In this document: positions 10,193 through 55,748 of the stretch, in pieces
How positions within the stretch are numbered: the stretch's first letter is position 1
Layout of the letters: each line of letters opens with the position of its first letter
NCBI GenBank assembly: GCA_965637545.1
Contig: OZ281497.1
Location: 17,670,001-17,734,000, forward strand
DNA from: Phallusia mammillata
Taxonomy: Eukaryota
Direction of reading: 5' to 3'
Length of the DNA stretch: 64,000 nucleotides
The notes under the pieces: model-generated
What the model saw: the letters and a program-made list of their open reading frames with translations, nothing else
Databases searched by the model: none
What the model was told of the DNA's origin: nothing
Translations under genes and position numbers: made by a program

Positions 10193-13100
10193 ATGGCCGA
10201 GACGGCATCTTTGTATGGAAGCAACCTCGGTCTTAACGGGTGTGGATCATTGGACATTGGAAACAACGTAAGCTGTAGGAACAACTCCTGCTCGGTTTTG
10301 CACCCGCTCGAATTCAACGAATCGCCAGTCGACAAGAAGCCGTCTGTGGGTGATACGCCAAGCGGCGGAGGTGTGCAGATGATTCAGCTTGACACGGTCC
10401 GTTCGCGAAAGGCCGAACAACCTAACATGAACAGTTGCTACAGTTTTCGAGGTGCAACTTTTCCGTTCGGGACGTCAATGCCTGATGGATCTTTTGACGG
10501 TAGTTTAGCGGGTCTTCCAGACAATGAGTCCTCATCCCAAGTTCATCACAGTGGCAAGGCGTGGGAGTCAGCTCACAAGTTTGAGTCTATGTCTCGACAA
10601 AGCTCTTGCAGCGGTTTTTCAGACCCTGGAGCCGACCTCAGCACGAACGGGCCACCCATCAGCGGCCCGTACGTATCGCACCAGCAGTCGGGGGCACCCT
10701 TCCCGTCAATGTTCGCCAGTTCCTGTCAGTTTGAAACGCAGCCTACCAAAGCTTACGAACCGAACATTCAACCGCTAGGGACAAGTCGGGATCCTCGTAA
10801 TGTAATTCACACCAACTTCATGTACGGCGATCGACAAGTTGCATTGGGCTCCGATTATCGCATTCTTGAATCCTCACCAGATGGTGCGCTTTCTTCGTTG
10901 TCAAAGCAAGCAGATTTTGACTGGAACATGCGGCGAAACAGTTTGCATTCAGTATCATCCGGACGTTCAAACTCTAGTTCTGGCCTAACGCCGAACGGCC
11001 GTTTGCCATCGCCAGATCAAGACCAATCGGTGCTACAACAAATGTACCAATTCCCCGATCAGTGTGCGCAAGAGCCCAGTCTTTCGCCCCTGTTAGAATG
11101 TATTACAAGCATACAGGACGTGCCGACCAGTCATAGCGTCGATAGCAACCAGATTCCTAGTCCTGTGGACGGTCTGCAGTGCAGCATGAAGGAGCGAGAC
11201 TTTTTTGGCAAATCTAACGTGTTTTGTTGGGACAATTTGGGTCCGAACTACAGCGATCAGAAATCCGTTACATTTACAAGCCTGGCTGACATTAGTCGGT
11301 CCGAATACGTGAACATGGAAACCTCATCGCAGGCCGAGGACTCCTATAATGTTTACGGCAACATTCGTGATCAAAACTTCATGGGGGTGAATGAACAACA
11401 TAGCGTTGGCGCACAAACTCAGTTGACTACGGACGGAAGCATGACGTGCATCGGCAGCCAAGACGACGGTAGTTTCTCCAGTAGCCTGGCCTCTAAGTTG
11501 CCGTTACTGCTGTACGTCGGTGGCGTGGGCGAATCTAACGATGAACAGTCATTTTCCGGTTTCCAAACGCAATATGGCTCAAGCGGCGCGTCAGCACCAA
11601 ATTCTGCACCCGTAAAATCTGAGACTTTCGATACACATGTGTTCCCAGATAGCAGAATTTCCTTCCCAAACGAAAGCAGGTCTGTTCCCATTGCTTCGTC
11701 CTCGTACAAAGGGCATAGCCACTTGCAAGATGAAGAAGACAGCCGATCGCCAATAGACGAGAGCGAGGGTTTGGGCGATGCCAAGGGCAACCAATTGGTG
11801 CCGGTGCGCTCCAATGAGGACGAGGATGGCAGCAGTCGGCCGCCATATTCCTATTCGGCGTTGATCGCCCTTGCCATACAAAGCAACCCGCGGAAGCGCA
11901 TGACTCTACGGCAAATCTACCACTACGTCACCACGTACTTTCCGTTTTACAAAAACAGCAAAGCAGGGTGGCGCAACTCGATTCGACACAACCTCTCACT
12001 CAACGACTGCTTTAAGAAGGTGCCACGCCACGACAGCGATCCGGGAAAGGGAAATTACTGGACTCTTGATCCTGGTAGTGAAAAGATGTTCGATAATGGA
12101 AACTTCAGGTAAATAGTTGTGCGTATTTTTTAACGTAATTCAACCCATGATTTTAATTTTCAATTGCTGAAATGATATCAGCCGCTCATGGGAGTGCTTG
12201 AAAAAATCCGACCCGAAATTCGCACAATCAGCGAAGTCAAGTTACTTTCACTTGTACAGCGCTTGTGGCATACCAATTCAGTCGTCACCACATACGCTCA
12301 ATCATCCTGCATTTCCATTGGCTTGTGTCGCGAACTGGCCAGGCAGGAAGCAGATAACGAACGGAAATGTGACGCTCATTCGAACTGTTACGGCTAGCAC
12401 GTAACCGGGTCTACAAATCCGGCTGCCGTTCGTGCGATTTACTTAGTATTCTGTGACGCATCCATCCTATTCTGTATGGCATTAAGACTGGGTTAGGGAT
12501 TAACACAATTCACTCTCCCATCAAGTGAAAGCGAGTCGACTCTACGGCTGTTAAGAGCGATGTGCCGTGTGTCTCTAAGCCTTTGTCTATGTTAACCTTA
12601 CTTGCAGTTGCACCGCACACCTATGTGGTCCGTACTGATAAAACGACGACGGATGTTGATCGTGGTTTAAACGTGCTACCCGAAAACGAAATTACGTTAC
12701 CGTTTTAATATTACCACGCCCAACATTTGTTAGTTGAATAGTGAACATATTTGAGATCGATTTATTTTCGTTTTTCTTTGGAATGCCATGATATTAGTTT
12801 GAAAACAGATTTGAGTTGCAATTAACACAAACCAAGAAAGAATGAATTTCGTCTGCAGTTGCCTTTGGTAACGACGCAAACGCTTTACAAATATTGTATT
12901 GACATGAACAGCTTCATTTAACCAAAAATTGTGTGTATGATTTTATGTACATGATTGTACTAGCTAATATTTAATGTAAAAATGAAGTCGCCTTGTTCTG
13001 CTTAGAAGCTACATTTATCAGTGTGTCTGTGCATGGTATAACTTGAAATAAACCCTTCCCTTCGTCAAAATATCGAATTATTTCACTACAAAGCCTCTGT

Positions 13101-16596: not shown

Positions 16597-19500
16597 ATGG
16601 TGTTGGTCGACCGGCATATTAGCCAAGTGACAGCCGCGATGAACTCGACGTTTCCACCGACGCCAGGCCATGCGCCTACAGCGCAGGATATGATGGATAT
16701 GCCATCGATGTACGAAAACTTATACCAGGCTGGGAACGTGCACATGACCGGGTCTCGACCGTCGCACGCCGGCCATTATCCGCTCGAATACTCGAACGGC
16801 GCCCCGACAAACCCGTACCTTTGGGCAGCCACTAACCCTTATAACTCTTCCTATATGCAAGGCTATGGCAGCTCACACCACCACGCTGCGGCTGTAGCTG
16901 CAGCAGGACAACGGCAACTATTTGGTCATCATCCACCTCCTCACCATACATCAGGATTTGGGTGCGATTTTCCGTGGCTTTCCTTATCAAGTCAGACCGA
17001 GCTTTTTAAGATGGTACGGCCGCCTTACTCCTATTCCGCATTGATCGCCATGTCAATCCAAAACTCTAAGGAAAAGAAACTGACTCTATCCGGAATCTAC
17101 AATTACGTAGCCGAAAACTTTCCGTTTTACAAACGAAGTCGCGCGGGTTGGCAAAACTCAATTCGTCACAACTTGTCGCTAAACGACTGCTTCAAGAAGG
17201 TGGCGAGGGACGAGGACGACCCCGGCAAGGGCAACTACTGGGCGCTTGATCCTAACTGTGAAAAGATGTTCGACAACGGAAATTTCAGGTATACATTAAA
17301 TCACAAATGGTAACATAATTTTTGCCAAAAATACCAACCAATCTTGCATACTATACGTATGGTTGTGTTTAAATTAAATTTAACAAAACGATCGCCAACT
17401 GAAACCGCCGCGCTTGGATATGGATCCTCGTGATGGGAATAATATTATTGTCGCCATTTTGTCGTCTCTCTCATGGGATGGCGATATCGATACACGATAG
17501 CTCTTGTTAATCCAAATGTCACTTTTACGCCGCATTACGGAGATTCGCAGGCCTTTGGCATCAGTGCGGATCTTTGTCTTAAAAATAAATATAAGCCAAG
17601 CACGACATAGCAAGGTGACGTATAGTGTGACGTAAATGCGCGGCAAACTCGGAATTCCTCCGCGCCGCAAATCGCCCGATCGCGCGCTCGATAAACAAAA
17701 TCGCCAAACTCAGGAAATTTAAACGTAAACAATTTACCAGCGAGGTAAGAGGATTAGATCTCGGCAGCGCCGCGATCGCACCTTATCTCGAAGTCCATCG
17801 AAAAGTCTTATGGGCGCTAATATTTAGCAAAAGAATGACAAGCGCCAAGTTGGTGACGCGATAGGAATCAGCATCTTCGAGTTATTTGGGTTTAATTACG
17901 GTGTTCGATGAATTGCGGCTCTATGGACGCGCACACAGGTACGCTATCCGCCGGTATGAAACTATTATGGTCTTGTAATGTATATCTGCACAACACCGTT
18001 TTTATCGAAAACATGCCCATCGCGTTAAATACCGGCGTTAGCGGTTGGATTTGTGGTAAAACAATGGCGTTCTTGCTTCACAACGTGTATTTGATAATTA
18101 AACCGTATGTTGTTGATGTTATGATCTCGACAACGTGTTAAACTACCTACATCAGCGTTAACACTGCAAATATCGCTGTCAGCTCTGAAAACGTGTAATT
18201 TTGTAAAGTCAAAATAATAAAACAACTTTAACAGGACCCTCAAAATTTGAAATAAGGAAAATCTGCGGCAACAAGTGAAACACTGTGTAAACGTTTACCA
18301 ACATTTAAACCACACGATTCGTTAAACTTATAAACCGACGCTTATCATGTCATTGCTTTTAAAGCGGTTTTGATAGAATCAAGTCTTAGTTGGTACCAAA
18401 CAAAAGCGATTGTGCTACTAGGCAACAAAGCACAGGAAGGGCGTTTGTAATGCAAGTCGGCGTTGATTTAGCGGTCGCAGGCGCAGGTTAAAGGCGACTG
18501 GCGACAGTTAAGGCAAGAAAACAATTGTGACATGTGATACACCGGCACGGACAGTATATGGGATTTCTTGCAACCAGTTTCAGGTGCGCAGAAAACAAAA
18601 CAGTTAAAACTTTTTGACAGCACGGAGCGACCGCTACAAACAAACAAGGGATAATTTTACGTGCGCATTGTTGCGGAGCATTAACACATTTATACCAAGG
18701 GCAGCTACTCAAATGACAGTTGGAAACAGTGGTACACATTGCAATCTGTTGCTATAAATTGTCCCAAACAAGGTCGTTACGGCTTGCTCCCACATAACTA
18801 CAAGGCTTTGAACTAAAACGTAAATTTGCGGCGGATTTCGGCTTTAGTAGCCTGTTTGCCCAACAGATAAATCTCCAATTGGTTTCGTGCTAATCAAACC
18901 TCATTCAAATTGCCGATGGGTAATTTAATCAAAACGTTGCGCCGTATACAGCTATAAAGGCTGGCATCCAGCACGTACAAAAAGTCGCAGCATCCTAGGA
19001 CTGTAAGAACCCCAAATTAAGCGACGGGCGAAGATTAGACGCATAGTTTTCGCGCTTGGTCGGCTTTCAATTAGGGTTAGTCATCGAATTTTGTCCCAGG
19101 TTCAACCAGACTCTTGTAGCGTCTGTGCGAGTCTCAGTGGAATTCAGATTGGCGACAATTTCATACGATGGTACTTGCCGTCGTATCATTCACCGTCGCC
19201 CAGCGTATCGCAATAGCAAATCGTCCCGTGAAGGACAGGTGTCGGCCGGCCCAAGTCGCGTTTGTTGCTTCCGCTTTTCCCACGTTCAAACTCGTCCTGG
19301 CCGCAAATCTCAAAACACCCCAGACTCCCAAATCCTGATACGAAGTCGCGGTTGTTTTGAAACGCCCCCAGACGAGCCGTGGTTATCCTTGACCCACGTT
19401 GGCTGTATTTGATCCAGCGCAAAACCAGTGACAATGAACAGATTGCCCTTTACAGGTTGGCCAAAACGTGGGAACAAAACCTAAAATGATCGCTCCAAAT

Positions 19501-34033: not shown

Positions 34034-36564
34034 ACAGTGTTAATATTTCAAAAAATTAGCATTGTTTTCGATGGATAGTTGCTTTACCAGTGGCATTTCA
34101 GTGGTATTAGTGGTATTTTATATTTATTTAAATCCTCTTTTTATGTATTTAAATCAATTACAACTAAATCGGAAAGCTTTTTCCACAGAACTGATATAAT
34201 TTGAATCGTACTGACCATCAAAGTATAGACAAGAAAAGACATAGAAACCTATGTCTAACTACAAAATTTGTACTTTTTTAAAGACAAATTTGCTCTAAAA
34301 CATAACCTTACTGTCAACGCGCATGCTAACGTAGAAAAATGTCAATAAACAATTAAAACCCGTTAAAAAATCTTCAACTTATCGCGACACAGGAATTTGA
34401 CTTTTCCGGCCATTGACGTCACAATTTCTGCGACTGTTTGTTTTAGTTTTCGCGTTACACAAAATGCCGGAAAATTTACCATCGCGCTACACTCAAACAT
34501 GTAATTTAAAATTATCTGCTATCAGACAAAAATACGCCTAATGGAAGTCTTGATGAGCTTGGCCCAAATATTTACACAAAATTAATAATTATAACTTCGC
34601 TATCTTTTTAAAATTAATATCCAGACGTTTTTTTTTAAACAGGCCTAATTCTGTCAGTTAAGCGGAAACGAAAACTTGACTGTTAACACACACAAACGAA
34701 AAATTGACACTTGTATATAGACAAAGTACCGAACAAAAATCGATTGGATTATAACACTAATATCGTTGACGTTCCTGGCACGTGCGATCCGTTCGTTTGT
34801 AAACATTCAAATTGCGTGCTTGCACTTTGGAGGATGTTTGGTTTAGTTTCGGAAACAAATAGCCACTAATCGGGTACTTCGGGCGATGTGCCGCGTTTTA
34901 GCTGCGAAAATCGAGCTAGCAAAGTCAAAAAATTAGTACGAAAGCATAATAGTAATTATGAATCAAACCATCACTGATTTATTCGTTTGGGCACCGGTTT
35001 AACAAAATGAACAAAGATTTTTTTCCCGTTTTATTGTAAAACATTGATATTTTTATATTGAATCATGTATAAACTGCAGTAATTTTTAAGAATATCTGGT
35101 CCCGAAACAGAAATTGGTAAAATAATTTAGGCGCGGACTGATTTCGTAAGCGAGAGAAGCGAATTACCAACCGACGCGCCTCTCTCGGAAATACAGGAAA
35201 AAGGTAATCAGGCGTGATGAAATAAAACGAATCAAAGAGCTCAATCCAAGTCAGTTTCCGTATAGTAAACAGCCAATATTAGGATTGCACACTTACAGCA
35301 TGGAAGTCAGAGTAAAAACAAGCCGAGTTGTTGTAAATGCAATCGTTAGGGTTCTTGGTCGTCAATCTGCTTGTCGACGCCGAACAGAAGAAATCGTTTT
35401 GTGTAAACAGAGTATTACAGCCGCGCCTGAACTAACAAGAGGCAGCAAAATCAAGGTGCAAGTAAAAATATTTTCGGCATTTTAACGGTGGTTGCCTGAT
35501 TGGATTAGAACACAAAGTGGTAAAATCGGACCTTGAGCGTTTTGCAGGCCATAACACGGACTTTAAAAACTCGCCGCTTGGTGGATAATTAAAACTCTGT
35601 TGCACGCAGAGATTTTGGCGCGCAAACCATTATTGCAGAGAATCCGGCCGCTGCGAAGTTGCATTGTTCCCCTGAGGCGCCTGATAACGAAAATCTGTTT
35701 ACCTTTGCTTCGCCTCATTGTCCATCGCTCATTCGATCTCGCATAACTGACTAAAACATGATTCGATTGAAAAAAAATCCTGCGTTACCCGGCCTTTTCG
35801 CTAATAGCTGAAACTGCACTTGCAACATGAGCTTTAGCTCGCCAAATCTATACTTTGCTCTTGGCGTACCAGTTGCATGCTACTCTGCGTGTATGGGAAC
35901 CGTCGTAGGGCCAGTGTCCCCAACGAGTGAGTGGTTAAGCATGCCGAATAATTTAGGTAATAAACGCAGTATAATGCGTACTGTAAACAAGGGTTTCGCC
36001 GGCGCTAAAATCTGCTGCAATGGGGAAAACAGCCCCAGTTGGTGTTTACGTTCAAACCCGTTTACCGGCCGCGAGTTGCTGGTGACGACACGCGACGTTC
36101 GACAACGGCGTCAAAGAAACTCATGTGGAACGATGCATCGTGTGTTGATATGGCAGTGGTGCGGGTGTCGGGCACAGGCATAAACGAGCAGACCTGTTGC
36201 CGGTGACAACTCGCCGACAGTTTGTTACTGCAACGCATGTTAGCTGCCGACAAGGTTTGTTACTGCAACGATTCCGGGTTTGGGGTTTAAATACGGGCCG
36301 AGTGAGGTTTTGTTTTTGGCAAAAGACCCAGGCGAGTTACTGAAAATACCGGTGCGTATTATCGGAAAGAATTTTGCACGTGCAAAGAGCGGAACATAAA
36401 TGGTTGGTTTGGCAAACAAACAGTTGGTTGCAGTTGTCAGTAATTAGTCATTATCAGCAATACGAGTATTTGAGTGTGATCGTGTATTATTTCTTTACAG
36501 TTATTTGGAAATTTTGGTGCCGTACAGGCTAATAAAGTAATTTTGAATTTTTACTTTGTTTATT

Positions 36565-39500
36565 ATGGTCTTTGATGTAAACCCGTTCGAAACACCGGAA
36601 CAGGATTTCGAGAGTTCGAGACAGCATTCGTATTCCGAGAGCTACCAGCCGCCACGAACCCCAGTTTTACCACAACGACAATTTAGTTTTTTGGCAGGTG
36701 AAACCAACCGCATAGGCGTTAAGCGTGAATCTCACGAGTACATTAACTACAGCAACCCGTTTCCGCACTCTTCAGTGCCCCAGAATTCCCGGGCCCCAGA
36801 CGCCGACCAGGCAACCACGTCACGCTACTCGCAAAACCCAGCCTCCGTGCAGTTTGGAAGCATGATGAGTTCAATTCCACCTCATCATCACGGCAGTAGT
36901 CAGCAAGATATCATTGACGGAAGCGGAAGCAGTGCATGTGGTTCAATGTACGATAACTTTTACAATCAAAACGCCTTCGCGGCACAAGCTGCCGCCGCTG
37001 CCCGGGGACAACACCCGGCTGCAACAGGGCATCCCTACGCTTCAGCGCTCGAATACCCATCAGCCGCCAGTGCTTCCAATCCTTATCATCTCTGGTTGAA
37101 TCCAGCAGCTGCTGGATCTTCATCAATGGGGGCAGGTAGTCCGTTTAACTCAGCTACATCTTACATGCAATCTGCAACGTATGGTGCGGCAGCGGTGGCA
37201 GCAGCGGCCGGGCAGCGTCAATTATTTGGCCCGGGAAGTTTCGGTTCTGATTTCGCTTGGCTTTCGCTATCCAGTCAATCAGAGCTTTTCAAGATGGTGC
37301 GACCTCCTTACTCTTATTCCGCACTGATCGCCATGGCAATCCAAAATTCACCCGAGAAAAAGCTGACTCTGTCACAAATCTACCAATACGTGGCCGAAAA
37401 TTTTCCTTTTTACAAAAAGAGCCGCGCGGGTTGGCAAAACTCAATTCGTCACAACTTGTCGCTAAACGACTGCTTCAAGAAGGTGGCGAGGGACGAGGAC
37501 GACCCCGGTAAGGGCAACTACTGGGCGCTTGATCCTAACTGTGAAAAGATGTTCGACAATGGAAATTTCAGGTATATTACATCGCGACGCCATTTTGTAC
37601 GAACATGCAATTGTAGTGAATAATCTTGCAAAACGTCCCTCTCCGCCGGCGACAGCAACGAACCGTAGTCTCATGCGCGACAAAAGCAGTAAACAACTAA
37701 ATTATGCGGAAAACAAATACAGCGTTTAAAGCATTCGGTTCAATGTGTTTTCGAATGTAACATTTTTTTTAAATACTATGTATATTACAAATAGGAAATA
37801 AACTAGTATTGTTTACCAAAGTGCATAAGAAATAGGAATTTATTTCCTCAAAGGGTGCACATGCTTTCCAGTGAGATAGGCCATCGCAATCCACAACACT
37901 AACAACACATCAGTCAAACCCAACTTTCGCGCGAGCACAACTCCACGATTTTATCTCAATCATTTTAATCGTATTATGCTAGCGTGGCACACACAAACGG
38001 CCATCCGTCTGCATAGAGTCGCTAGCGATAATCCTCAACGAGTAGTCATGACGTTAAAGCTGGCATGTAGATTTAAGCTACAGTCGAAAACTGCGTTTTG
38101 GGGTCGGGACAACACAGTTTAGAAATTTACACAAAACATGCTCATGAATATGTGAGCGACACTATAACATCGTCGGGGCCGGCGTTTATCGTACGCGGTG
38201 TAAACCACGGTATCTTCCGATCAGGTTATAAGAGGCGAACATGCCCGTGCTGCTGCTGACGCACTAAGAGAAATGTCACAGGCGTGTTTGTGTGCGCTTA
38301 ATAAGCAATGAAATGTGCCACAATATCTCAAAAACACTTATTAATCATCTTCCTTCAATGTCGAAATAATCTTCTGAATAATACGCCACAGAAACAATTG
38401 TCCACAACAAATACATGACAATATGCTCCCGAGGCCGTAACGATGTACATATGTCGACCTTTTTGGAAAAAAACACCATTACCTTGCAAAGTGAAGGACC
38501 AAACAGGAAATTGCGGTCTGTTTCAAATGAAAATCGGTCAACCAACAGCGCTATTAAATACTTGCCAGCGATCCCTAACAAGCGTAACAAAAACACTTTA
38601 GTTGTGATTTGCACGCACCTGCCCACAACAGCTATTCAAAACGGCCTGGGTTGTTTGCGTTTTTAAGCTTGAAGATTCAGCGCTTGCAGAAACTCTACTA
38701 TTAATAACGATTTAAACCTGCAAATACATCTTAACCGTGCAAAAGTTTTAATTTCTTTAAAGTATGCAACAAAAAACAACATTTACAAAATTGTTCCGTC
38801 GTTTACGCAGGCGTGCTATCAAATGTCGCATCTTGAAATATCGGTAGGGTTCAAATCTGGGGTCGCCACGCCTGCTTTGGTATAAGACGATAAGTTGCTT
38901 CTGAATGCTGGTTGGCACCTTTTTGTTGTACCAAACAAAGCAACGAAACACCACAACATTCCAAACTATTTTCAATCCCAAAGCCTTTACATCGCAATCG
39001 CATTTCAAAGCATGTACTAACTTAATACACTAATTTATCAACCGCACAAAAAATGGATCAATTGATTTTCGTGTTCACAACGCGCAAACGCTATTGAATA
39101 GTTCAAATACACATGAAATACTACTCACGACTTTCTCCTCCTAGACCTAGACATTAAAACTACATATTTTACTGCAACTACTTTTTTGACTTCAACAAGC
39201 ATATGTGTGTGCAATATCTTGACCGCAACAAAATAATCCACGTATGAAATCAAGCTGTACATCTTTATGGATTCACAAATTCTGGTAAAGACAGTCAGTC
39301 GTTTATTAGAAAAAGTGTACAATGGCGTTGAACCCTTGTGAACTGTGCATGTTAACCGCCATGGCGCGCTTAGGGGGTAACTACAATAACGTTTGGCGAA
39401 AGTCTATTTGGAAACTGTTGACAGTGAAAACTTACAAAACATGTTTGTCGACAAGCCGGGCGATTTGCGTGATAGCCGACGCAGGCTAAAATGTCGAAAG

Positions 39501-53034: not shown

Positions 53035-55748
53035 ACCGAACCTGAACCCATATGACAAGCGGTTCGACTCCCTGGTTAAAACACGTCAAACTGTGCGAAA
53101 GTATTCCAAGCCATGCACTGGCGATTTGTACCGAGCGGTTTAATAACATGTACTAGGTCGTTGTTTACATCTCTGGATGAACTCCGAACTCATTTTACCA
53201 GACTGGTAGTGAACAGAACATATTCTGCGGTTGCAAAGACCTTTGCTCTATTTATCGCTAGAAATAAATCCAAATAGCGTGTCAAAGCTTACCTCAAAAT
53301 GTCATTTTTACATTGGTGGTTTTACCACATCCATACATTACAATTTACAAAGAAGTACATGCAGAGTCGCACATTTCGCGGGAGCATGTGCATCGTTATT
53401 TGTAAGTGCAACACTTCTTACTGGAAATTGCGGTGGGCATATTAAAAACATTTACGAATAGTGTCAAGCTAAGTAATGTTAAAGAAAGCCATGAACTTCT
53501 GTCGTATGTTATTGTGTTTATAGCAGCAAGCAACATATATCTCAAAAATTCACCATCATCATTTCGCCGAAATGGTAAGTGCGAAAAATTCGAAAATTGT
53601 TAATAAGCGTTACGCACCACTGCGTACAGTTTCCAAAAAAAAATTTTCATTTTTATTTTTTTTAAGCCATAGAGAGTGGTCAAGGTACGTACAAATCGAC
53701 ATTTTGAGGTATGGGAGAAAACGTTTCAGCTTATAAAGTCACATTTCTGGTCTCAAACAGTATTTTCCAATAAAATGTCTTTAACCGTTTACATAAGTCG
53801 CCCATATACAAATGCATACACAGTACATAGTCCAATGTTACGAAAGAAATAAAAAGACATTCCGAGCCTAATATTTTTCTATAAATTGGGACAGATGTAC
53901 GTTAGAGCAAGAAGTTTCACCTCGTAGAGTCACATTTCTGGTCTCAAACAGTATTTGCCAACGATATGACTTTAACCGATACTTGTTTACGTAGGTCGCA
54001 CATATACAAATGCATACATCGCTACGCCAATGTTACGATCAAATAAAAAGACATTCCGAGCCTAATATTTTTCTATAAATTGGCACAGATGTACGTTAGA
54101 GCAAGAAGTTTCACCTGATAGAGTCACATTTCTGGTCTCAAACAGTATTTGCCAACGAAATGACTTCAACCGATACTTGTTTACGTAGGTCGCACATATA
54201 CAAATGCATACATCGCTAAGCCAATGTTACGATCAAATAAAAAGACATTCCGAGCCTAATATTTTTCTATAAATTGGCACAGATGTACGTTAGAGCAAGA
54301 AGTTTCAGTTTGTAAAGTCACATTTCTGGTCTCAAACAGTATTTGCCAACGAAATGACTTCAACCGATACTTGTTTACGTAGGTCGCACATATACAAATG
54401 CATACATCGCTAAGCCAATGTTACGAAAGAAATAAAAAGACTATCCGAGCCTAATATTTTTCTATAAATTGGCACAGATGTACGTTAGAGCAAGAAGTTT
54501 CACCTCGTAGAGTCACATTTCTGGTCTCAAACAGTATGTCTTTTTATTTATTTCGTAACATTGGCTTACCGATGTATGCATTTGTATATGTGCGACCTAC
54601 GTAAACAAGTATCGGTTAAAGTCATTTCGTTGGCAAATACTGTTTGAGACCAGAAATGTGACTCTACGAGGTGAAACTTCTTGCTCTAACGTACATCTGT
54701 GCCAATTTATAGAAAAATATTAGGCTCGGATAGTATTTTTATTTCTTTCGTAACATTGGCGTAGCGATGTATGCATTTGTTTATGTGCGACCTATACGTA
54801 AACAAGTATCGGTTAAAGTCATTTCGTTGGCAAATACTGTTTGAGACCAGAAATGTGACTCTACGAGGTGAAACTTCTTGCTCTAACGTACATCTGTGCC
54901 AATTTATAGAAAAAATTTAGGCTCGGAATGTCTTTTTATTTGATCGTAACATTGGATTAGCGATGCATGCATTTGTATATGGGCGACTTATGTAAACAAG
55001 TATCGGTTAAAGTCATTTCATTGGCAAATACTGTTTGAAACAAGAAATGTGACTTTACAAGCTGAAACGTTTTCTCTCATACCTCAAAATGTCGATTTGT
55101 ACGTACCTTGACCACTCTCTATGGTTTAAAAAAAATAAAAATGAAAAACAAATTTTGGAAACTGTACGCAGTGGTGCGTAACGCTTATTAACAATTTTCG
55201 CACTTACCATTTCGGCGAAATGATGATGGTGAATTTTTGAGATATATGCTGCTTGCTGCTATAAACACAATAACATACGACAGAAGTTCATGGCTTTCTT
55301 TAACATTACTTAGCTTGACACTATTCGTAAATGTTTTTAATATGCCCACCGCAATTTCCAGTAAGAAGTGTTGCACTTACAAATAACGATGCACATGCTC
55401 CCGCGAAATGTGCGACTCTGCATGTACTTCTTTGTAAATTGTAATGTATGGATGTGGTAAAACCAACCAATGTAAAAATGACATTTTGAGGTAAGCTTTG
55501 ACACGCTATTTGGATTTATTTCTAGCGATAAATAGAGCAAAGGTCTTTGCAACCGCAGAATATGTTCTGTTCACTACCAGTCTGGTAAAATGAGTTCGGA
55601 GTTCATCCAGAGATGTAAACAACGACCTAGTACATGTTATTAAACCGCTCGGTACAAATCGCCAGTGCATGGCTTGGAATACTTTCGCACAGTTTGACGT
55701 GTTTTAACCAGGGAGTCGAACCGCTTGTCATATGGGTTCAGGTTCGGT
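53035..55748. repeat. Spacer-less long inverted repeat (palindrome); left arm 53035-about 54536, right arm about 54537-55748
   Basis: 53035-53736 is the reverse complement of about 55055-55748 with a few differences; the ORF track shows mirrored ORFs 53406..53603+ / 55188..55376- and 53231..53461+ / 55337..55552-. The inner parts are opposed tandem arrays meeting at about 54537. Confidence 0.95.
53737..55054. repeat. Tandem repeat of about 194 bp, about 4.1 copies on + then about 2.7 copies on -
   Basis: Unit marker AGTCACATTTCTGG starts at 53737, 53928, 54122, 54316 and 54511. The reverse-complement marker AGAAATGTGACT ends at 54663, 54860 and 55054. Confidence 0.95.

Follow-up and report, generated by a model that had tools for sequence, protein, structure and literature searches.

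Two forkhead genes that we assign to the FoxI subclass, FoxI-A and FoxI-B, lie 20 kb apart in direct orientation in a stretch of 64,000 nucleotides (nt) from the ascidian Phallusia mammillata (contig OZ281497.1, positions 17,670,001 to 17,734,000; G000:C4:17670001-17734000 in our numbering), hereafter the window. They are very probably ancient tandem paralogs whose forkhead boxes undergo recurrent interlocus (non-allelic) gene conversion. Within each genome compared, the two genes are near-identical from forkhead codon 42 to the end of the exon, a region free to drift from one genome to another; homogenization is weaker in a second converted tract, helix 1 (codons 1-17), and in codons 18-41 and everything upstream the A and B lineages have been kept separate. 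The data support concerted evolution that has recurred in five or more ascidian genomes, not one event.

A converted tract between FoxI-A and FoxI-B

An initial annotation of the window had singled out positions 17140-17293 in FoxI-A and 37423-37576 in FoxI-B (154 nt each) as differing at only two positions, both synonymous, and the 45 codons directly 5´ of this tract as differing in 17 synonymous and 5 non-synonymous codons. Recomparison reproduced the first statement to the base and the second exactly. The tracts match at 152 of 154 bases, the exceptions being C/T differences at 17226/37509 (GGC/GGT) and at 17277/37560 (AAC/AAT, a CpG-to-TpG change), and the differences in the 45 upstream codons amount to 28 nt. 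The tract comprises 149 nt of exon (17140-17288) and the first five bases of the intron (donor GTATA), 3´ of which the introns of A and B do not align. The sole DNA similarity of the two loci in a BLAST comparison extends from 16957 to 17293 and from 37239 to 37576 (87.6% over 338 nt), and exon 2, the introns and the flanks gave no further similarity in this comparison. Among degenerate codons that encode the same amino acid in A and B, 9 of 20 differ in the upstream segment and 2 of 46 in the tract (Fisher p = 1.7e-4). The tract of the window pair was also longer than expected by chance in a GENECONV-style permutation of variable sites (p = 5e-5).

For all further comparisons the region was divided into four segments: segment 0, the 51 nt upstream of the box; segment 1, codons 1-17 (51 nt); segment 2, codons 18-41 (72 nt); and segment 3, codon 42 to the exon end (149 nt, the tract described above). 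In the window the parts of the box are as follows.

17017..17067, + strand: second converted tract in FoxI-A (segment 1), older or less frequently converted; forkhead codons 1-17, helix 1
37300..37350, + strand: segment 1 in FoxI-B, partner of 17017-17067
17068..17139, + strand: divergence island in FoxI-A (segment 2); forkhead codons 18-41, with A-specific K18, G26, N29 and R40
37351..37422, + strand: divergence island in FoxI-B (segment 2), with B-specific P18, Q26, Q29 and K40
17140..17293, + strand: converted tract in FoxI-A (segment 3); from forkhead codon 42 through the last exon base (17288) and donor GTATA
37423..37576, + strand: converted tract in FoxI-B (segment 3), partner of 17140-17293

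Based on the standard forkhead fold, we take segment 1 to be helix 1, segment 2 to be strand S1 and helix 2 with the turn that precedes helix 3, and segment 3 to run from recognition helix 3 through S2, wing 1 and S3 into the start of wing 2; the description of the tract as helix 3 and the wings in the initial annotation is right by the same standard. The helix and wing labels come from established forkhead knowledge and from the sequence match to solved FOXC2, FOXL2 and FOXA domains, which match the forkhead box at up to 8.5e-41. A single-sequence AlphaFold model of the domain (mean predicted local distance difference test score 54) was too poor for mapping secondary structure.

FoxI-A and FoxI-B are old paralogs

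In assemblies of ENA, JGI and Logan, a word search retrieved two sets of unnamed proteins from ascidians, and these align as two ortholog groups. The A type carries DFPW, QTEL, K18, G26 and R40; the B type carries DFAW, QSEL, P18, Q26, Q29 and K40. In a tree of exon-1 proteins, the A types form a clade with support of 100/100 that includes a Styela clava protein, and the B types include proteins of Clavelina lepadiformis and Ciona savignyi; these groupings indicate that the A/B duplication is older than the split of all these ascidians. The B protein of one of the genomes used below (sp2) is 85% identical to Ciona savignyi H2YXT2 and belongs to the same 90% cluster. Among the A and B sequences fetched as DNA, K/P18 and G/Q26 are fixed without exception. 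Position 29 in these sequences is Q in every B and N, M or L in A. The A-type model of Styela clava has H26 and Q29.

Five A/B pairs, each from one genome, were assembled for the DNA comparison: that of the window (W) and those of sp1, sp2, sp3 and sp4. The sp2 and sp3 pairs each lie on one contig. In sp1, which was recovered with identical sequence from at least nine contigs in several samples of JGI and ENA, A and B are each reported on a longest contig of 80,321 bp, both in ERZ27241786, ERZ27241785 and 3300001689, a coincidence from which their placement on the same contig was inferred. For sp4, the copies come from two separate contigs of a single metagenome sample, which makes this the weaker assignment. 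Four unpaired loci (L019, L021, L022 and L023) served as extra orthologs only, and the partner proteins of x5 and x6 (P0123 and P0129) stood outside the DNA comparison.

The sp3 pair served as an out-of-sample prediction, which held. The true neighbor of sp3 A (L017), a B-type protein on the same contig (P0125, L024), was found by a cluster look-up, and the two differ at 3 of 149 nt in segment 3 and at 3 of 51 nt in segment 1. A B copy from another contig of the sp3 sample (L022; sample ERZ25067582) differs from L017 at 28 tract positions and shows no homogenization; this candidate pair was set aside as mispaired, the two copies lying on different contigs with different coverage.

Segments of one box differ in their history

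Same-genome A and B copies differ at 2, 5, 1, 3 and 3 of 149 nt in segment 3, while comparisons between genomes, whether A/A, B/B or A/B, all give 21-32 differences. The proportion of synonymous sites that differ (pS) in this segment is 0.04-0.19 within genomes (the four pairs other than sp3) and 0.78-1.0 between genomes; across the two halves of the box, synonymous sites have reached saturation between genomes (pS 0.7-1.0). A and B agree in the amino acids of all 49 complete tract codons in each genome fetched, and since the two proteins are identical there, conversion in the tract homogenizes synonymous sites only. The initial annotation had spoken of homogenization of the DNA-contacting half of the factors; at the protein level, conversion leaves the DNA-contacting surface unchanged.

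Segment 2 behaves differently from the tract. Same-genome A and B copies differ here at 19 (the window pair), 19, 25, 16 and 30 of 72 nt (about 26-42%). Mean A/B differences are 21.8-23.3 (23.3 across genomes), compared with 15.4 for A/A and 13.6 for B/B. Orthology is thus preserved in this segment, given that same-genome A/B divergence equals cross-genome A/B divergence and that orthologs are closer. Segment 0 behaves like segment 2. Segment 1 was again homogenized, to a lesser degree: same-genome copies differ at 7, 4, 2, 3 and 5 of 51 nt, against a mean of 11-12 in every type of comparison between genomes. Its amino acids are the same in A and B in every genome fetched, save at forkhead codon 13 of the window FoxI-A (17053-17055, TCA), which encodes Ser against Ala in every other A and B sequence. 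Conversion has not erased this Ser13, a lineage-specific change within the helix-1 tract.

The limits of the tract are similar among the genomes. In all five, the 5´ limit falls among forkhead codons 31-50 and the 3´ limit at the exon-intron junction. The block of A/B identity reaches furthest in sp3 (L017:10421-10693, L024:10526-10798), where it extends 5´ to about codon 31 and A has K40, as B copies do. This state hints at transfer in the B-to-A direction, with one amino acid altered, and as the sp3 tract runs further 5´, the 5´ boundary is not mechanically fixed.

Trees built separately for the island and the tract were strongly incongruent. The tree of segment 2 groups sequences by ortholog, with an A clade at 100/99, while the tree of segment 3 pairs them by genome (W 97/86, sp3 96/97, sp4 96/95), with W and sp1 together forming a clade of four sequences at 94/91. 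Approximately unbiased (AU) tests rejected monophyly of A in segment 3 (p = 8e-77) and same-genome pairing in segment 2 for four pairs (p = 1e-4 to 2e-3; p = 5e-4 for the two window copies). Permutation of 104 variable sites gave p = 5e-5 to 1.5e-4 for the four pairs tested, and no significant tract was detected by the same GENECONV-style permutation in ortholog pairs. Finally, among the 120 ways of pairing the A with the B copies, the true pairing is the unique minimum in segments 1 and 3 and ranks 10th in segment 0 and 22nd in segment 2.

Alternatives to recurrent conversion

Within-genome identity at synonymous sites might arise with no DNA being copied, if nucleotide-level constraint or a species-specific codon preference fixed these sites; an exonic splicing enhancer, RNA structure, a small-RNA target or translational selection are candidate causes. 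The tract adjoins a splice donor and encodes an invariant protein sequence in the A and B copies of all genomes fetched, as such constraint would have it. We nevertheless consider this explanation refuted, given that the same tract codons are saturated at synonymous sites between genomes (pS 0.78-1.0). The initial annotation had named synonymous conservation between orthologs of distant species as the observation that would speak against conversion, and what we found instead were the 21-32 differences in 149 nt given above. Also, the third tandem paralog, FoxI-C, lies outside the homogenization and provides an internal control: C differs from A or B at 16-20 of 37 tract codons that encode the same amino acid, compared with 1-2 for A and B of the same genomes (in the window, 17 of 37 for A/C and 2 for A/B). 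Likewise, 6-13 of the 18-20 same-amino-acid codons of the island differ between A and B within a genome. An error of assembly or polishing, in which reads of one paralog were used to correct the other, could in principle occur at an identical block of 150 nt, a place where short-read polishing can cross-map. Though both copies are known from assembled sequence, such an artifact appears very unlikely, its chances close to nil: there are two real differences within the tract, both flanks are unique, the whole genome holds these copies only, and the same pattern recurs in four other genomes that were assembled independently and by different methods.

A single recent conversion event peculiar to the genome of the window would suffice for the 152 of 154 matching bases if the window were considered alone. 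It is highly improbable in light of the five genomes, which have nearly the same tract limits and a private set of synonymous codons each, such that at least one event per lineage is needed after divergence to saturation; in addition, segment 1 is at a separate, older level of homogenization (7 of 51 in the window, as opposed to 2 of 149 in segment 3). Of the recent ectopic conversion proposed in the initial annotation, the conversion stands, on the evidence of the trees, the permutation and the saturation between species, and the single recent event does not, as five genomes are homogenized. Three observations do weigh against recurrent conversion as we describe it. The pairing of the sp4 copies was partly inferred from the similarity itself. 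The AU test of same-genome pairing in segment 2 reached only p = 0.057 for sp3, a value to be expected were the sp3 tract to reach into the island. Lastly, GC content at third codon positions is raised in the tract of the window genome (0.69-0.73 compared with 0.49-0.54) and of sp4, whereas sp1 and sp2 show no such rise; GC-biased conversion thus has no consistent support across genomes.

A possible mechanism and the meaning of the island

The copying between A and B is repeated and non-reciprocal and is limited to two blocks of the box. Recurrent conversion between FoxI-A and FoxI-B would proceed by repair of a break in one copy with the other copy as template, whereby a short stretch is overwritten. 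The 3´ edge of the tract coincides with the exon-intron junction, presumably because the introns have no homology, and the 5´ edge would be set at the last paralog-specific codon (R/K at 40). Tracts that enter the island would swap K/P18, G/Q26 and N/Q29 and may be purged by selection, while the mismatch load of the island may also hinder extension of the heteroduplex. Silent conversion in segments 1 and 3 could then fix by drift, and each conversion would restore the identity that eases the next one.

It is also conceivable that conversion is recurrent and that its 5´ boundary is purely mechanical, set by a mismatch density that blocks heteroduplex extension or by a break hotspot fixed close to the end of the exon, with no part for selection. 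We hold this to be possible, if less than probable. The DNA divergence of the island (16-30 of 72 nt, as above) is enough to impede recombination, and the tract limits recur in the five genomes. Against a purely mechanical boundary, the sp3 tract runs about ten codons further 5´ and has turned R40 into K, so that entry into the island is possible, and helix 1 beyond the island is converted too, the island having been skipped from both sides. The fixation of K/P18 and G/Q26 across the A and B DNA sequences argues in the same direction, although position 29 varies in A and the A-type model of Styela clava has H26 and Q29. Selection acting on the island leads to a more specific proposal, namely that these 24 codons have been shielded on both sides since before the ascidian orders split and are the sole part of the box that encodes the functional difference between A and B. 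We put this forward tentatively, as an idea that may well prove wrong. If true, conversion would amount to a natural mutagenesis screen that pinpoints K/P18, G/Q26 and N/Q29 as specificity residues, with the recognition helix invariant. Work on HNF-3/forkhead proteins reportedly placed specificity determinants just N-terminal of helix 3, which would fit the island.

The FoxI cluster

The window, from an assembly of 240 Mb in 312 contigs, holds three forkhead genes in tandem on the + strand, in the order C, A, B. Exons were treated one by one and searches used single exons. The start of FoxI-B (MVFDV...) was inferred by eye from the MVF/MVY starts of P0012 and Ciona savignyi H2YXT2; an alternative Met is found at 36862.

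10193..12108, + strand: FoxI-C exon 1, third tandem paralog (639 codons)
16639..17288, + strand: FoxI-A exon 1, 217 codons, the last one split; donor GT at 17289; open reading frame (ORF) with Pfam Forkhead match (2.8e-39); orthologs P0001-P0006
20832..21609, + strand: FoxI-A exon 2; acceptor TTTTTAG|G; reads RRRKRRD... up to a stop; the join fits Styela clava RefSeq P0126
~36565..37571, + strand: FoxI-B exon 1, within ORF 36556-37623; Pfam Forkhead match (7.4e-41); orthologs P0008, P0010-13 and P0017
40748..41435, + strand: FoxI-B exon 2; acceptor TTTAACAG|G; the join fits the C. savignyi and Clavelina models

In C, A and B alike, the intron follows NGNF and the first two bases of the Arg codon behind it. 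The acceptors restore NGNFR|RRRKRRD in A and NGNFR|RKRKRRD in B, which fit RefSeq and UniProt models of Styela clava, Clavelina lepadiformis and Ciona savignyi. The Pfam domain (PF00250) is complete, spanning positions 2-87 of the 88 profile positions in both A and B. Named top matches are all FoxI1, FoxI2, FoxI3 or FoxI1c of vertebrates and amphioxus, together with a Styela clava 'forkhead box protein I1c-like'. On this basis, A, B and C are classed from their sequences as forkhead factors of the FoxI subclass, an assignment that follows the closest named matches rather than a formal tree against other Fox classes.

Across the forkhead box, FoxI-C shares 74% identity with A and B. Between A and C, only 4 positions differ in the opening 33 nt of the box (17017-17049 and 11837-11869), and pS in the 5´ half is 0.51 for A/C compared with 0.72 for B/C; a small exchange between A and C in these 33 nt is possible, judging by the sequences. 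A search of the whole genome for the tract found no further copy, the only other matches being paralog C and one FoxA-like gene. The latter, a fourth forkhead match 11 Mb away (L004, G000:C4:6688206-6688466, - strand; KPPYSYIALITMSI...FVKIPREPGNPGKGNYW), was rejected as a member of the cluster, being FoxA-like and unrelated.

The gene order C-A-B is also found in the related loci L015, L017 and L019. In the sp4 genome, a retrotransposon with ORFs for integrase, RNase H, reverse transcriptase and aspartic protease (L018:1039-3496, - strand) lies about 6.5 kb upstream of FoxI-A, at the place that paralog C occupies in other genomes. Elsewhere in the window, a large near-perfect palindrome (53035-55748) has arms of 289 nt and 271 nt at 99-100% and holds tandem repeats of 194 nt.

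Relation to known systems

With their Pfam Forkhead domain and best named matches to FoxI1 and FoxI2, these genes resemble the vertebrate FOXI1/2/3 subclass, and the C-A-B cluster agrees with the expanded FoxI set of Styela clava, for which four FoxI genes were reported (PMC8122590). The FoxI literature we found treats the genes as ordinary paralogs, with no mention of partial concerted evolution, and a full-text literature search found no report of conversion among FoxI genes or tunicate Fox genes.

The linked Dlx pair of Capitella teleta offers a parallel, with a GENECONV tract of about 150 bp in the most conserved part of the homeobox, next to an intron (PMC3199776). Like FoxI-A and FoxI-B, these are linked paralogous developmental transcription factors with a tract inside the DNA-binding domain and a mosaic pattern. 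The Dlx case concerns one species and a tail-to-tail inverted pair, and its tract includes intron sequence, whereas the FoxI genes are in direct orientation 20 kb apart, their tract stops at the intron, five genomes show it and an island lies between two tracts. According to the passages of PMC3199776 that cite them, concerted evolution is known for the engrailed/invected homeoboxes of hexapods, and mammalian gene pairs have been converted for more than 100 million years (Carson and Scherer 2009). As described in those passages, both share with FoxI the long-lasting, domain-restricted interlocus conversion of ancient paralogs and differ in gene family and taxon. The primate L/M opsins are comparable in that conversion erases divergence save in short patches with the amino acids that distinguish the copies; there, however, nearly the whole gene is homogenized, in contrast to only about 200 nt of an otherwise unalignable FoxI pair.

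The FoxI pair is a case of concerted evolution of a known kind, new and unusually clean, and involves no new mechanism. It provides a replicated example of partial concerted evolution in a DNA-binding domain, in which two silent tracts flank an island of paralog identity, and a natural system for how selection and mismatch density limit conversion tracts. Trees of forkhead-box nucleotides, or dating by synonymous divergence (dS), would falsely suggest recent, lineage-specific FoxI duplications in every ascidian. The three or four residues of the island are candidates for what sets FoxI-A apart from FoxI-B.

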